Source of the DNA: Oikopleura dioica
Lineage: Eukaryota > Animalia > Chordata
Length of the DNA: 64,000 nucleotides
NCBI GenBank assembly: GCA_907165135.1
Contig: OU015568.1
Location: 13,330,001 to 13,394,000 of the forward strand
Direction: 5' to 3'
A program made the position numbers and the translations under genes. Below the pieces are notes generated by a model. That model was not told the origin of the DNA and did not search any database. It saw nothing but the letters and a program-made list of their open reading frames with translations. Below are positions 1 to 6,308 of this stretch, piece by piece. How positions within the stretch are numbered: the stretch's first letter is position 1; every line of letters starts with the position of its first letter.

Positions 1-2
1 CC

Positions 3-542
3 AGACTATGTTATACCCTGTTCACCCAAGAGTGCCAGGACGAGTTCGACAAGAACTTCCACCAGCTCTGCAACAACCCCAAGTTGCATGCAAAGATCCA
101 GCTGCCTCTGGACTACAAGCTTCGTGAAGACGAAGAATATGACACCAACACCCATGCTAACCAGAAGCGAGAGCGGGCGGTTAGACATAGGATTAAGTTC
201 GGGACGGCGACAGCCGAAGAAAAAAGATGGTACCTTAACACTAAGAAAAACAAAGCCATCAACGAGGCAGAGTTGAAAAAGGCGGTGCAGAACAGCAACC
301 AACGGAAGAGAGGCGGGAAACCGCAACAGAACAATAGGGGCAATCAGAGTGGAGGAAACTCCAACGATGGGAACGGTAACGGGGGCGGAAACGGAGGAAA
401 CCGAAACCGCAACAACAATAAGAAGGATAACAAGGCTCAGGGAGGAAACTCCAACAACTCTAACAACCAGCCCCCGAACAAAAAGCAAAAGCAGAATGAG
501 CCAAGGGGACCCCCTAAGCAAGAGCCGAAAAAGGAACCATAG
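3..542 (+). CDS. C-terminal part of element ORF1 (gag-like / nucleic-acid-binding, N/G/Q/K-rich tail), 5'-truncated by window
   Basis: Frame is open from position 3 (RLCYTLFTQECQDEF...) to TAG at 540-542. It has a basic low-complexity tail (GGNSNDGNGNGGGNGGNRNRNNN) and lies just upstream of the YR ORF. The gag label is positional inference only. Confidence 0.55.
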   Translation, partial: RLCYTLFTQECQDEFDKNFHQLCNNPKLHAKIQLPLDYKLREDEEYDTNTHANQKRERAVRHRIKFGTATAEEKRWYLNTKKNKAINEAELKKAVQNSNQRKRGGKPQQNNRGNQSGGNSNDGNGNGGGNGGNRNRNNNKKDNKAQGGNSNNSNNQPPNKKQKQNEPRGPPKQEPKKEP

Positions 543-896
543 GTGACTTCGCACAAAGTGTTGCCACTTCTCCTTGTCTTTCTCACGGAAATAAACCGCG
601 GGCGATCGCCCAACTAGTGCTACACCGGCGAGGACCCTCGCAAAACCTCAGCAGATTATACGGCCACGTAAAGGCTTTTACTGTCCCCGAAATATACCCA
701 GGGCTTGGTTGGGAACCCAATCAAGAAGGGATTCATTTATTTATTCTCATGTAATCTTTCCTGTAAATAGAATATATCTGGGAGTAATCCCAAGTTATGT
801 ATTGTTGCCAACAGAGTCTAACGCAACCACTATTCAGAAAACTGTTTCGCTGCAAGCACAACGCGCGCAAGACGAGCGCGAATAATTCGGCGTTAG

Positions 897-2747
897 CCAG
901 CCAAAAGAGAGCCGGACGGCAAGGACGAATGGCCGCCAAAGCGCCCGCCTGACCCAAACCCAATCCGAGTTCCCCCAAAATCACTGGGCTCAGTGAGGAA
1001 GTCTCGGAGGATAGTTGGAGAGGATCCGCTCGATCAGCCCCCTCTGGAAAGCGTTCTACCAAAACGAGCAACACCGGCGAAGCGAAAGCCCCCACCGGCT
1101 ACCGAAACCGCTGGAATCGGGCCTGTTCAGGCCGAAGCTCCAAAGGCGATTGCCTCTGAGAAAGCGAAGCCGAGAAGAAAGAAACCCAAGCCCAAAAGGC
1201 CAAAAGTTCTACCAGTCCCAGCGGAGGATGAAAAAGATTGGTTCGAAGAAGTTCAAGGCGAAGGCCTCGATCTCGTGGACGAAGATGAAGCTTACTGCTC
1301 AGAGTCAGTCTGGACAGACGCTCATATCAGAGTTGCAGTGGCAAGCATGGTGGAGCTAAACAGAGGGAAAACCTTTGACGAAATCACATCAGCCCTTCTG
1401 GATTGGATTGACAAGAATGTTTGTCCACCCAACAGACCAAATAGATACCAGCACTGGTACCAAGTGATACGGGCCGCTCTCGAAAGAGAAAGCAACGCCA
1501 GACTTCCAGGCTCATGCTCGAACGAGATTGTAAGATGGGCCAAAGCGAGGGCCAAATCTCTCGCGGGAAAGAAGCTCTATGAGCCATCACAAGCCGAAAG
1601 GTTTCGCATGTGCGATATGATCGCGCTATGGTCGCATATGCTGGCATCAAGGAAGCCAGTGAGAGTAGAAGCAGCCCTCTATAGCGGTATATGCTTCTTT
1701 ACCGGGGCCCGCGCGATCGAGGTTGGTAAACTCTTTATCGAGGATATCTACGAATCGATCCAAGGAAATGCCTTGGTGTTGCCAATAAGGGAAAGCAAGA
1801 CGAACGTCTTCAAAAACATTCCGGAAAGATTAACAATGTTTTTCGACGACCGTTGCCCCCTGGACTTCAAAGCCCTTTTCTACGAAATCCTGGGCGTCCG
1901 AGAGGAAGGAAAACTCTTCCAACACTGCAGAAACCGCAGAATACTCTGCTACCATTATAGCAAGGCCTCGAAAGAGCTGGGCTGGGCCAGAGTTCCATCG
2001 GGACACTCGGGAAGAACTTCCGCCATCACGATGGGCATTGCTACAGGCATCCCCAAACTAGATCTAGAAATCATGTACCGGTGGACACCGGACTCTAGGA
2101 TGTACCATAGGTACAGGGCTCTAAATATGGAGGAATCCGAAATCGGGGCCCCGGCTATGGTAGCGCGAGCCTTGGTGGATTCTCTGTTCGGAGGTCCGCA
2201 AGGTACGGCGCTCCCGGCGGGAAATTCAGAGAATCTAGTCTCGCCGGAAGTAGGAGCCAGAGTTCTGGCCGATGCTAATTGGTACGCTCGTACAGTAAAA
2301 AGGCTGCACTCTGATCATGTAGCGCATCAGGGGATCCCCTCGGCGCTAGACCCTAAACAGAGAAAAGGCCTTCCTAACAGACCGGTGTTTCGTGATAGGG
2401 AAAGTGGAGCGATGTCAAGTCAACCCCACACTTCCGATTCAAAGGCGCACGCCTCCACCTCTAGTCTGACACATACGCTGGAACCAGCGGCTAAATTGGG
2501 AGAGACCCCTCTCCCGAACCCCCAGACTTCGAAGGAGGTCGAATCTTTTAAAGGAAAATATCCTCTGCAAAGTGATTCGGGGAAACCCGGAGAAATCTGC
2601 ACTTGCTGCGCAAAATGCAAACAGCGTAAAGCAGTCGGGGGGAGCCCCCCGGAAGTCCCGGCGCCAGTAGAAAGATCCTCCTCGCAATTGCCGGATTACA
2701 TTCAACGCCAAATGAGTCGCCTTAACGACACTCCCTTCGCAAAGTAA
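897..2747 (+). CDS. Tyrosine recombinase (phage-integrase fold) of YR element
   Basis: Catalytic residues occur in order: R (FTGARAIE), K (RESKTN), HxxR (SGHSGR), W (MYRW), Y (MYHRY). The frame is open from 897 (ORF track starts at GTG 993). It has a long P/K/acidic N-terminal extension and a Cys cluster (CTCCAKC) in the C-terminal tail. Confidence 0.9.
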   Translation, partial: PAKREPDGKDEWPPKRPPDPNPIRVPPKSLGSVRKSRRIVGEDPLDQPPLESVLPKRATPAKRKPPPATETAGIGPVQAEAPKAIASEKAKPRRKKPKPKRPKVLPVPAEDEKDWFEEVQGEGLDLVDEDEAYCSESVWTDAHIRVAVASMVELNRGKTFDEITSALLDWIDKNVCPPNRPNRYQHWYQVIRAALERESNARLPGSCSNEIVRWAKARAKSLAGKKLYEPSQAERFRMCDMIALWSHMLASRKPVRVEAALYSGICFFTGARAIEVGKLFIEDIYESIQGNALVLPIRESKTNVFKNIPERLTMFFDDRCPLDFKALFYEILGVREEGKLFQHCRNRRILCYHYSKASKELGWARVPSGHSGRTSAITMGIATGIPKLDLEIMYRWTPDSRMYHRYRALNMEESEIGAPAMVARALVDSLFGGPQGTALPAGNSENLVSPEVGARVLADANWYARTVKRLHSDHVAHQGIPSALDPKQRKGLPNRPVFRDRESGAMSSQPHTSDSKAHASTSSLTHTLEPAAKLGETPLPNPQTSKEVESFKGKYPLQSDSGKPGEICTCCAKCKQRKAVGGSPPEVPAPVERSSSQLPDYIQRQMSRLNDTPFAK

Positions 2748-3407
2748 GTTTTATTGCTTCAAGGGTAAATCTCAACCGCTTGTTTTTAAGGAATCTTCAA
2801 GAAGGTTGACGATAGTTTACCCCGGAAGACGCAGGAGTCCTCAAGCAGGACCTTTTATTTTGTTTTCCCCGGTTTTTCTGCTGTATCAGAATAAAACCTG
2901 TTCTCAATTTACTTAAGTCCATTGCTCGACAGCAGGTATCATGCATGCTGATCAGCAACTTGTCTCTCTACTTTTTGCCTTTCGGCATAAAAGCATTCTC
3001 GTAGTGTAGCGACAAGCTCACGACTTTCTCGAGTACCGTTATATCGCCAGGTTAGCTAAGCAGACTATCACTCCTTACCGCACGGTATTTTTAGTGTAAG
3101 TAGCTAATCGGGTTTGATCGCGCCGTTTCTTTTTCGCGCACCTTACTCGAGCGCCTAACGTGGTGACCGGTTTTTTCGCCTTCGAAAGCGTAGGGGTGAA
3201 AACCGGCTCCCATAAAGTTAGGCATGCCCAGGCCGTATTCCCGGTCGGGAAGATGCGCGTAGTAGCTTAGGCTCCGTAGCATTTAAGCCCATCTGTAAGG
3301 CTGGTCCCAGCGTCAATCGTGTTAGTCGAGACTAGCGGGGCCCAGAAGCTGAACAGCTGGCCAACAACTGAGTACGACATATCAATGAGTGGTAGAAGTA
3401 GTGAAGT

Positions 3408-3453
3408 CTTGCGCTTATATTTGCATCTATTGATTTTTCGTCTTTTATGATTA
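3408..3453 (+). repeat. Direct repeat B1 of split terminal repeat
   Basis: CTTGCGCTTATATTTGCATCTATTGATTTTTCGTCTTTTATGATTA, identical to 3874-3919. Confidence 0.9.
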
Positions 3454-3873
3454 GACCTGACCAAAAATCTGGGTGCTCAAACATAGCAAGCCTCGTTGTT
3501 GTTGAGATGCTGTTGAGGTGACGCTTAGTGCGCGCCACCCCTGTTTTGCAGTTTTGTCTCTAGAATTGTTGTGCGCGCGGGCGCGGCGCAAGTCGAAAAG
3601 CTCATTCGCGTTAAAAAGCACGCTCGTGCGGCCGATTTTCGGAGTTCTCCGATGTGACCGACTTAGCGATGCTTTTTATACTTTATTTAATTCTAGCGAC
3701 CCCTCCCTCCTTCCCCCAGTAGAGTCTCCTTATGGCCCTACGTTGGTTTTACCTTGAGAGCGTAGCCCATACCTACCTCCCTGGTCCTGCAACACAGCAT
3801 CTCTTTAGTGCCGGTGGTTAAGGTCTGCTTCCTGCCACATACGGTACGTATACTTATCATAGAAGACGTTACG

Positions 3874-3919
3874 CTTGCGCTTATATTTGCATCTATTGAT
3901 TTTTCGTCTTTTATGATTA
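3874..3919 (+). repeat. Direct repeat B2 (element right terminus)
   Basis: Identical 46-bp copy of 3408-3453, immediately followed by SL intron sequence. Confidence 0.9.
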
Positions 3920-3975
3920 AAGAATCGTCTCCATGCCCTCTCCCTCCTATCCCTCTCGCCTCTTACAAACGAAAC
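3920..3975 (+). pseudogene. Intron (3') half of an SL RNA gene interrupted by the YR element
   Basis: AAGAATCGTCTCCATGCC...CTCCTATCCCTCTCGCCTCT.ACAAAC aligns with 5720-5775 of the intact SL gene with a few substitutions. The SL exon and GT are replaced by element sequence. Confidence 0.85.
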
Positions 3976-4021
3976 ATACTAGCGATGAACAAGACTCAGA
4001 CCAGTTCCAGGTGGATATTAT

Positions 4022-4432
4022 TTATTCGCTTTTATTGAGAAAATTGATTGGAACATTTCTACCGAACTTTCTATCAGCAGTGAATAAAAGGTTTTTGCCA
4101 TCGAATTTGGAAGAAAGTGACTCAAAGTCAACTGTTTTAGGCACAGAAAGGGTTCTCTCCCAGTTGTGTACTGACTCGATCTTCATTCTTTCGACGATCT
4201 CTGATGTTTTTGAAAGGCCAGAGATTTGTAACTCTCTCTTTGACTCGTCCTTGGTGATTTTGAGGTCTTCTTTCTGCGTTGGAAACGAAGTGAGATCGAC
4301 TGTTGCTGACCAGGTTGTAGGAGTGATCATTTCTTGCGAAATGGAGTAGGGCTGGAAGCGACGAACACGGCATTTGCGCTGGGTTGGGCGGTCGAATTCA
4401 GGAGAAAAAGGAAATCCGGCGATTTTGATCAT
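4022..4432 (-). CDS. Small heat-shock protein (HSP20/alpha-crystallin-like)
   Basis: Intronless 136-aa ORF similar to the divergent partner (WSATVDLTSFPTQKEDLKITKDESKRELQISG...WERTLSVPKTVDFESLSSKFDGKNLLF) with an ACD-like pattern. An HSE cluster lies upstream. Confidence 0.8.
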   Translation of the reverse strand: MIKIAGFPFSPEFDRPTQRKCRVRRFQPYSISQEMITPTTWSATVDLTSFPTQKEDLKITKDESKRELQISGLSKTSEIVERMKIESVHNWERTLSVPKTVDFESLSSKFDGKNLLFTADRKFGRNVPINFLNKSE

Positions 4433-4494
4433 CTTTTTATTTTTGAATCTCTTTGAAAGATTTTTGGTTTGAATGTGCTCTTGCTGAAACGAGC

Positions 4495-4680
4495 CGATTA
4501 AATACCTTTGAAAACTTCCAGAAGATTCGGGAAATCAAGTGTAGAATATTACAGAACATTCCAGAATAAATAGAACATTCAAGAAAACGGATCTTTAAAG
4601 AAAGAAGATTCGAGAATAACCTAGCCTGGAAATGGAATTTTCTGGAAGAAACGAGGACAGCAATAAGTGGCTATAAATAC
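4495..4680. promoter_or_regulatory. Bidirectional heat-shock promoter: five perfect HSE arrays plus TATA box
   Basis: Alternating nGAAn/nTTCn pentamers at 4515-4534 (4 units), 4553-4567, 4572-4586, 4603-4617 and 4634-4648 (3 units each). TATAAAT is at 4672-4678, with a TATA-like element on the minus strand near 4497-4504. Confidence 0.9.
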
Positions 4681-4731
4681 CTAGCGGGAGAGGGCTTTCT
4701 CATCACACCAAAGACACAAAAACCAACGAAA

Positions 4732-5163
4732 ATGTTCACTTTTTCCAATGAAAACTTCGAGCCGCTGATCAACCAGATCTTCTCTGAGTTCGCCCATTCC
4801 GCCAGCAAGAAAGGAGGACGCTGCCAAACTGTTGAGAAATCGAGCAAGTGGTGCAGCTGCATCAACCTTTCTTCCATCCCCACCAAACCCGAGGAACTGC
4901 ACGTGAAGGTGGACGAGAAGAGCCGCAATCTGACCGTCTCTGGAAAGTCTGAAACGGAGTCTACCCGACGAGACGGATTAAAGATCTTCTCAACTCACGT
5001 CTGGACAAAACAAATTCGAGTTCCAGAGGATGTGGAGCTGAAGACGATCGCGTCCAAGTTGCACGAGAATCAGCTCACTTTCGGCGCTGAACGAGTTCAG
5101 AAAGAAGAAGACAAGCAACAAGAAATTCCGATCGAGATCGTCGATACTCCTGCCCTTGACTGA
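4732..5163 (+). CDS. Small heat-shock protein (HSP20/alpha-crystallin-like)
   Basis: Intronless 143-aa ORF containing KPEELHVKVDEKSRNLTVSGK...WTKQIRVPEDVELKTIASKL..NQLTF and a C-terminal IPI/IEI motif typical of sHSPs. TATA and HSEs lie upstream. Confidence 0.85.
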   Translation: MFTFSNENFEPLINQIFSEFAHSASKKGGRCQTVEKSSKWCSCINLSSIPTKPEELHVKVDEKSRNLTVSGKSETESTRRDGLKIFSTHVWTKQIRVPEDVELKTIASKLHENQLTFGAERVQKEEDKQQEIPIEIVDTPALD

Positions 5164-5293
5164 GAAGGTCGATTGTCGTTCATTCCTTTCTTACCTGATT
5201 TTACGGAAAACACATAAATAAAGTATTAACCTGCAAAAACATAATCACAATTCATAAATTTGCTATATATTGTGGCTAGAACCGGCCTCCATC

Positions 5294-5413
5294 GCTTAGC
5301 GTCATACCGCGTAGAATAAACCAGTTCTCGTCCGATCACTGAAGTCAAACTACGACGGGCGGGGTTAGTACTTACATGGGTGACCGGTTGGGAATACCTC
5401 GTGCGCTAAGCAT
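5294..5413 (+). rRNA. 5S rRNA
   Basis: About 120 nt, GCTTAGCGTCATACC...TCTCGTCCGATC..GAAGTCAA...GGTTAGTACTT..ATGGGTGACCG..TGGGAATACC..GTGCGCTAAGC. The ends base-pair (GCTTAGCG/CGCTAAGC). Confidence 0.95.
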
Positions 5414-5423
5414 TTTGCTTTTT
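5413..5423 (+). terminator. Pol III oligo-T terminator of 5S
   Basis: TTTTGCTTTTT directly after the 5S 3' end. Confidence 0.75.
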
Positions 5424-5677
5424 GAAACGCTGACTCTTCTTTTTCGAGGATACATTCAGCCTCTGAGTTTCAGAGTCGTGTTGTTGAAGAATCAACTAAT
5501 CAGTAATCGAAAAAGTCACCATGTTTGCGTGAAGTAAGCATTGAGAGTTGAGCTTGCGTGGCGGGCGGCGTGGCACTTGTGAAAAAGCGCCCTCTGCCGC
5601 GCGCTTTTCTGAAAAGAGGCCGAAAATAGGAGCGTGCAGCGACAAAACGACCTCGAAATCAAGCACCCCTTCTCTTT

Positions 5678-5770
5678 ACTCATCCCATTTTTGAGTCCGA
5701 TTTCGATTGTCTAACAGGTAAGAATCGTCTCCATGCCTACTCTCTCCTATCCCTCTCGCCTCTCACAAAC
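5678..5770 (+). ncRNA. Spliced-leader (SL) RNA gene; exon 5678-5717, donor GT at 5718
   Basis: ACTCATCCCATTTTTGAGTCCGATTTCGATTGTCTAACAG|GTAAG matches the 40-nt O. dioica SL as I recall it. It lies about 265 bp downstream of 5S in the same orientation, the known 5S-SL linkage in this species. The 3' end is approximate. Confidence 0.92.
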
Positions 5771-5808
5771 AAAAACTTCTTGGAAGAAAAACCCTCCTGC
5801 AGGGAAAC

Positions 5809-6308
5809 NNNNNNNNNNNNNNNNNNNNNNNNNNNNNNNNNNNNNNNNNNNNNNNNNNNNNNNNNNNNNNNNNNNNNNNNNNNNNNNNNNNNNNNNNNNN
5901 NNNNNNNNNNNNNNNNNNNNNNNNNNNNNNNNNNNNNNNNNNNNNNNNNNNNNNNNNNNNNNNNNNNNNNNNNNNNNNNNNNNNNNNNNNNNNNNNNNNN
6001 NNNNNNNNNNNNNNNNNNNNNNNNNNNNNNNNNNNNNNNNNNNNNNNNNNNNNNNNNNNNNNNNNNNNNNNNNNNNNNNNNNNNNNNNNNNNNNNNNNNN
6101 NNNNNNNNNNNNNNNNNNNNNNNNNNNNNNNNNNNNNNNNNNNNNNNNNNNNNNNNNNNNNNNNNNNNNNNNNNNNNNNNNNNNNNNNNNNNNNNNNNNN
6201 NNNNNNNNNNNNNNNNNNNNNNNNNNNNNNNNNNNNNNNNNNNNNNNNNNNNNNNNNNNNNNNNNNNNNNNNNNNNNNNNNNNNNNNNNNNNNNNNNNNN
6301 NNNNNNNN
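5809..6308. other. Assembly gap (500 N)
   Basis: Run of n. Confidence 1.

Follow-up and report, generated by a model that had tools for sequence, protein, structure and literature searches.

A young DIRS-order retroelement of 18.15 kb has probably inserted, as a one-off event and in the orientation of the gene, into one of the ~55 redundant spliced-leader (SL) RNA genes of Oikopleura dioica. The relatives of the element sit elsewhere, so the evidence points to a single tolerated insertion rather than to a family that is aimed at SL genes. The insertion was found in a 64,000-nucleotide stretch of DNA, called the window here (C1:13330001-13394000), of the 64.3-Mb, 19-scaffold OKI2018_I69 assembly (G000). 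Coordinates without a prefix are window positions, and a slash within a motif or between repeats marks a joint.

Architecture of the Element

The window contains the end of the element, with the following features.

1-3919, plus strand: last 3.9 kb of the DIRS-order retroelement; the whole is 18,154 bp, C1:13315766-13333919
1-539, plus strand: C-terminal part of a 470-aa element ORF with a Gly/Asn-rich tail; the open frame runs from L037:9130 to window position 539
993-2747, plus strand: ORF of the tyrosine recombinase, 584 aa when counted from GTG; the frame is open from 897
3408-3453, plus strand: repeat B1, 46/46 identical to B2
3454-3697, plus strand: repeat A2, a copy of the left end A1; 99.6% identity with C1:13315766-13316010
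3698-3873, plus strand: single-copy spacer that separates A2 from B2; present once in the element and without differences in the contigs of four sequencing runs
3874-3919, plus strand: repeat B2, which forms the right end of the element; three other copies also end in ...TTTATGATTA

The termini are split direct repeats in the order A1...B1-A2-B2, a layout that is also found in a second copy on C4 and in the metagenomic relative L056. The element starts at C1:13315766, 14,235 nt upstream of the window and at the first base after a 500-N gap (C1:13315266-13315765). Because A recurs at this base, the element measures 18,154 bp and its left flank is without assembly sequence. A1 and A2 agree at 244 of 245 positions, and their sole difference is 1 nt, the base that all four sets of reads add at 3635. 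Short-read contigs of all four runs add one base each at the non-coding positions 3087, 3192, and 3635. Given single-base indel errors of the Nanopore-based assembly, the frame breaks in the element ORFs may not be real. These frames are broken at different places in the studied copy and in the C4 copy.

The element encodes a reverse transcriptase (RT; Pfam RVT_1, E 2.8e-8, L037:7177-8829), and an intact 835-aa ORF of a metagenomic relative matches the same family (E 3.2e-9). A methyltransferase-like domain after RT/RNase H is represented by weak matches only, in the RT protein of a relative (RT_RNaseH, E 0.05; PCIF1_WW, E 0.13). The 470-aa ORF is 64% identical to the corresponding ORF of the C4 copy and has no Pfam family match. 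Seven ORFs are kept between the two lineages. Two of them encode orphans of ~1000 aa and 917 aa, and a third encodes 315 aa with weak RING-finger matches. Apart from these RING-finger matches, none of the three orphan proteins has a match in Pfam or the ESM Atlas, where look-ups of the 980-aa and 917-aa ORFs gave nothing usable. No endonuclease family was found in the element ORFs.

The ORF at 993-2747 is identified by its modeled fold as a tyrosine recombinase, Cre-like in structure, that stands in place of a DDE integrase. Searches of Pfam, PDB sequences, and PDB profiles returned no match, and the identification comes from fold search alone. The AlphaFold model, built with 15 homologues, is confident for residues ~110-340 only. 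Its best folds in Foldseek are Cre, Flp, XerH, lambda Int, the Tn1549 integrase, and protelomerases (Cre E 5e-5, prob 1.0), and the top fold matches consist only of tyrosine recombinases and type IB topoisomerases. Residues R240, K269, H338-x-x-R341, W364, and Y374, forming the pattern R-K-HxxR-W-Y, are invariant across 14-15 homologues; these share 42-65% identity, and all are from marine metagenomes save one from the O. dioica genome.

Reverse transcriptase, recombinase, split direct repeats, and an insertion free of target duplication together assign the element to the DIRS order, with a PAT/Ngaro-like architecture. The initial annotation had called it a tyrosine-recombinase retroelement, a description that the Pfam match of the RT, the Cre-like fold, the catalytic residues, and the repeats support. 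DIRS1-like elements have been reported in O. dioica by Volff et al. 2004, as cited in PMC3266345.

Junctions with the Spliced-Leader Gene

Immediately beyond B2 lie the remains of an SL RNA gene and a short array of other genes.

3920-3974, plus strand: interrupted SL RNA gene, 3' remnant from intron +3; base-for-base alignment with the intact paralogue C1:13434127
4022-4432, minus strand: HSP20-like ORF; weak Pfam HSP20 match, E 0.019
4732-5163, plus strand: HSP20 gene; Pfam HSP20, E 7.6e-10
5294-5412, plus strand: 5S rRNA gene; Rfam RF00001, 97 bits
5678-5774, plus strand: intact neighbouring SL RNA gene; exon 5678-5717, GT 5718-5719; the exon is the published SL

At the right junction, B2 abuts the SL intron from position +3 with no gap between them, just as the initial annotation had read it. 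The 18-mer AAGAATCGTCTCCATGCC begins at 3920, directly 3' of B2, and occurs at only two window positions, 3920 and 5720, with 0 matches in 100 shuffles. The stretch common to the remnant and SL genes is 55 nt long, with 91% identity to the neighbouring intact gene and 98% identity to the copy at C1:13434127. The exon of the neighbouring gene is letter for letter the 40-nt O. dioica SL published in PMC6883708.

The left junction was searched for in the assembly in its predicted form and was not found there. Since A1 begins right after the 500-N gap, it is only the assembly that lacks the SL exon. Logan contigs of four public runs were aligned to window positions 3000-4500, and one contig of run X1 extends by 28 unaligned letters to the left of 3454, where A begins. 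These letters, TGAGTCCGATTTCGATTGTCTAACAGGT, correspond to the 3' portion of the SL exon followed by GT (...CTAACAG-GT), and repeat A continues from there with its first base. The support for this junction is one short-read contig of one run, possibly from the assembly's own sample, and contig depths in the Logan runs are unusable for copy number or zygosity. Behind 3697, the loose end in the read contigs (TCTTTACTCAGTACGG...) is A1 continuing into the interior of the element. The left junction is an SL exon, and the earlier statement that the exon is absent is correct for the assembly and incorrect for the short-read contig, in which it precedes A1. The gap of OKI2018_I69 is thereby partly filled, as the missing sequence to the left of C1:13315766 ends in an SL exon.

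The insertion can be reconstructed as exon-GT / A1 ... B2 / AAGAATCG..., with no target duplication and no deletion. The left ...CAGGT/A1 and the right B2/AAGAATCG rebuild the intact SL sequence of the paralogues, which indicates integration without a target-site duplication. After ...GATT, three A's are found at the B2 junction, and the intact SL gene has two A's after GT. This count, combined with the read-derived left junction, places the break exactly between intron +2 and +3. Insertion at the SL splice donor is thus borne out from both sides, and the breakpoint is free of the TA/A ambiguity that was earlier attributed to it, with ...CTAACAGGT standing directly before GACCTGACC, the first bases of A. 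Trans-splicing was considered as the origin of the exon-element joint and was rejected; the intron GT is kept at the left, and the intron resumes at the right.

The element and the intact SL gene share a 20-kb contig with arbitrary 500-N scaffolding gaps on both sides, one at window 5809-6308 and the other ahead of the element start (C1:13315266-13315765). The chromosomal placement of the contig consequently comes from Hi-C scaffolding alone. These boundaries (PMC8008620), the single-base errors of the Nanopore-based assembly here, and the fact that none of the read contigs listed is shown bridging 3886-3944 would fit a chimeric contig whose joint between B2 and the SL intron does not exist in the animal. 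Such an artefact is most improbable, however. An independent short-read contig contains the reciprocal junction, SL exon plus GT plus A, which a true insertion predicts and which makes the misassembly considered earlier unlikely. Reads also confirm that A1 runs on into the element interior, and the remnant stands where paralogous units carry an SL gene.

Empty Sites in a Repeated Gene Unit

The interrupted gene belongs to a unit with the order SL gene, HSP20-like ORF (minus), HSP20 gene (plus), 5S, and SL gene. The position of 5S next to SL fits the 5S/SL linkage known from PMC8008620. Full-length units recur with 86-88% identity at C1:13434223, C1:13736315, C4:12012132, and C4:12016593, and partial copies are found at several more loci. 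An intact SL gene precedes each of the two plus-strand units on C1 (C1:13434223 and C1:13736315) and the unit at C4:12012132; the minus-strand unit at C4:12016593 is flanked by an intact SL gene at C4:12017966. At the paralogue C1:13434127, the exon is present where the element stands at the studied locus, and the rest aligns base for base. Judged by these alignments, the insertion site is seen in its empty state in the paralogous units, which have an intact SL gene at this position.

The insertion is a recent event because B1 equals B2, A1 equals A2 once the read-supported base is counted, and the remnant matches a working copy at 98% identity. This very young integration of a giant DIRS-order element is cleanly resolved, with both junctions recovered and empty sites known from paralogues.

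Small heat-shock genes are embedded in 5S/SL cassettes at window 3920-5790, C1:13434085-13436000, C1:13736198-13738060, and C4:12012011-12018000. To locate the insertion site in other assemblies, the protein of the adjacent HSP20-like ORF was looked up by exact match, and nothing was found. Two SL genes, at C1:16148090-16148200 and C4:12015393-12015480 (both minus strand), are rearranged. One of them has exon bases 14-37 inverted in situ, with an intact ...GGT/AAGAATCG immediately downstream; the other has kept only the last 7 exon bases, and unrelated sequence takes the place of the rest.

Family Copies and the Candidate Core Site

The family has four members in the genome: the studied copy, the C4 copy (C4:8438744-8457069), a copy at C3:1994242-2001549, and a shorter one with its end at C3:680383. 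The C4 copy is 18.3 kb long, complete, and collinear with the studied copy, with seven ORFs in common at 34-85% amino-acid identity. The coding DNA of the two is 64-74% identical, yet their 30+22-nt B/A core is identical. Repeat B matches at 46 of 46 positions in two O. dioica lineages that are ~30% apart in coding DNA. The copy at C3:1994242-2001549 is degraded, truncated, and rearranged. The shorter relative (C3:672351-680383) is without the first three ORFs, and a search for its left end found none. No further family copies were found in a B-repeat pattern search of the genome.

All three other copies have the B2 end ...TTTATGATTA, which is followed by CATCGGAC.., TTCAAACC.., and GAGGATGC... 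In longer form these right flanks are CATCGGACTTG, TTCAAACCGAG, and GAGGATGCAAT, and they are unrelated DNA. The C4 copy lies ~60 nt upstream of the ATG of an opposite-strand open reading frame (C4:8457069-8457160, 8438680-8438743), and in an anchored comparison over 60 positions its target agrees with the joint of the element itself at 27, where ~18 are expected.

Relatives in metagenomes comprise 9 JGI and 5 ENA/Logan loci, of which only L056 is readable past B2. The L056 flank beyond B2 contains no O. dioica SL sequence. A likeness of this flank, ATTTTTGA...ACAG, to an SL exon was judged uninterpretable without the SL of that species. A scan of viral contigs for the B repeat gave a single match, which was unrelated and due to chance. 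The B repeat and the B/A joint are kept from O. dioica to the TARA/JGI marine metagenome relatives (CTTGCGCTT...TTCGTCT-N14-RGACGAA), as seen in window 3408-3480 and in L052, L056, L058-L060, L062, and L063. The B/A joint is a candidate core site for the recombinase.

Site Specificity

The initial annotation had suggested a site-specific family whose recombinase recognises the SL donor as an attachment site. The distribution of the element argues against such a family. An SL census of the genome gave 56 SL-intron matches and 54 exon-intron junctions, or ~55 introns with up to 2 mismatches, and among these introns only the studied one adjoins an element; none of the ~54 other SL genes is occupied. 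Other irregular SL genes have a 2-nt insertion (one gene), a truncated exon (one), or an inverted exon piece (one). When the flanks of the copies are tabulated, most copies are at unrelated sites, as all three others (3/3) end in unrelated DNA, and one of the four 3' ends of the family is in an SL gene. The C4 copy has an identical core and landed in a non-SL site, which also counts against site specificity. The number of insertions of the studied lineage from which to judge is one.

Recognition of the SL donor as an attachment site is similarly disfavored by the target itself. In an anchored comparison with the junction core of the element, the SL target agrees at 16 of 60 positions, as expected by chance. 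For DIRS1, a 3-nt identity between circle joint and target is the published integration rule (PMC3266345; PMC7192593). The circle joint TTA/GAC and the SL target GGT/AAG have no 3-nt identity, and the C4 target shares one A only. The rule does not hold at the SL insertion, where the recombinase has integrated the element with neither a target duplication nor any detectable homology between target and joint.

A weaker preference is conceivable on account of the 12-mer TAAGAATCGTCT, which covers intron +2 to +13 and spans the SL breakpoint. The same 12-mer is found 14 nt outside A1 in the left flank of the C4 copy. It has 54 occurrences in the genome, 15 of them outside SL genes, and the reversed control has 6. 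Within the 12-mer lies the hexamer TCGTCT, which also forms the conserved left arm of the family joint TTCGTCT-N14-RGACGAA. The motif was noticed post hoc, and the chance of the coincidence is ~1e-3 by a liberal estimate that allows for the flanks and SL words examined.

A protein of the element could read approximately TAAGAATCGTCT and integrate within ~25 bp of it, by guidance or tethering, which would make SL genes favored and not exclusive targets. This explanation is unlikely, even with an exact 12-mer at both the SL breakpoint and the C4 copy, just 15 non-SL copies of it in 64 Mb, and within it an arm of the element's own B/A core, which metagenomic relatives have kept. Type-specific target preference is also known for Ngaro elements of Cafeteria (PMC8547959). 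Nevertheless, the motif lies at different distances from the crossover and on different sides of it in the two cases, and this difference in geometry excludes a strict att site. The rest of the C4 left flank resembles neither an SL gene nor a B repeat, and its interpretation as a degenerate form of either was rejected (shuffle P 0.6 and 0.7, respectively). The three readable right flanks (C4, C3:1994242, and C3:680383) and the L056 flank are without the motif, and the ~54 SL genes that have it are all empty. That the whole family is guided to approximately TAAGAATCGTCT with its TCGTCT arm, and uses multicopy SL genes as preferred safe landing sites, is distinctly unlikely.

A preference could instead be regional, with chromatin or intense transcription drawing integration to the neighborhood of 5S/SL cassettes and the exact base being incidental. 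One complete copy interrupts an SL gene and the second lies 27 kb from the SL cluster C4:8484323-8488460, a proximity with an estimated chance of ~2-3%. The two C3 copies, however, are on a contig without an SL gene, and more distant recombinase matches in the genome lie 100 kb to Mb from SL loci. Among ~12 loci outside C3, one at less than 30 kb is no surprise, and a regional preference is quite improbable.

A Probable One-Off Insertion

The one-off insertion is the likely explanation for the studied locus. A circular DNA copy of the element, containing the B2-to-A1 joint that is kept internally as B1/A2, was probably recombined into the chromosome by the element recombinase. In the published model, DIRS-order elements integrate without duplicating their target (PMC3266345; PMC7192593). 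The recombinase would need little or no sequence identity with its target. The insertion may have persisted because the loss of one of ~55 SL genes would be costless where most other sites of the genome are genic, and the position at the splice donor would be incidental.

Several figures weigh against this explanation. SL genes amount to ~5.6 kb in 64 Mb, which gives ~1e-4 per event under uniform random insertion, and with only ~4 family sites an SL target is an unlikely draw. The distance of 27 kb between the C4 copy and its nearby SL cluster adds to this. The comparison with relatives is limited in that, at 64-74% identity of coding DNA, these might have a different preference. The insertion can serve as a marker for whether the element still moves in Okinawan O. 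dioica.

Comparison with Known Systems

The O. dioica element resembles PAT-like and Ngaro-like elements of the DIRS order in its combination of RT and tyrosine recombinase, in its A1...B1-A2-B2 repeats with an internal circle joint, and in its lack of a target-site duplication. Unlike these elements, it is ~3 times longer (18 kb), contains at least three extra conserved orphan ORFs, and does not show the 3-nt identity of joint and target (TTA/GAC vs GGT/AAG). It also differs from DIRS1-like and PAT-like elements in that a methyltransferase domain is only hinted at in a relative (E 0.13).

Non-LTR retrotransposons specific to SL genes are CRE1/CRE2, SLACS, and CZAR of trypanosomatids and NeSL-1 of nematodes. 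They use a restriction-like endonuclease and target-primed reverse transcription, and essentially all copies occupy one fixed position of the SL exon. The O. dioica retroelement is like them in interrupting an SL RNA gene in the orientation of the gene. Unlike them, it has a tyrosine recombinase, terminal repeats, and an intron site, and one of four copies is in an SL gene. If SL targeting were true, it would have arisen independently and be recombinase-based rather than endonuclease-based, and the element would provide a natural recombinase with a defined eukaryotic target. It would then be the first tyrosine-recombinase retroelement tied to SL genes, and an association of this kind would also be new for chordates; no description of a tyrosine-recombinase element in an SL gene was found in the literature.

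Directed insertion is possible in tyrosine-recombinase retroelements, as seen in Cafeteria burkhardae, where Ngaro types differ in target preference. Endogenous virophages are preferred there, with 91% of type 1 and dozens of insertions (PMC8547959). The O. dioica case differs in being a single insertion, and a site at the level of sequence is defined in neither (PMC8547959). Dada DNA transposons target multicopy small-RNA genes with a site specificity that is consistent across the family (PMC8869645). Family-wide specificity of this kind was tested in the O. dioica family and not found, unlike in Dada. What the two have in common is a redundant small-RNA gene as a harmless landing site (PMC8869645).
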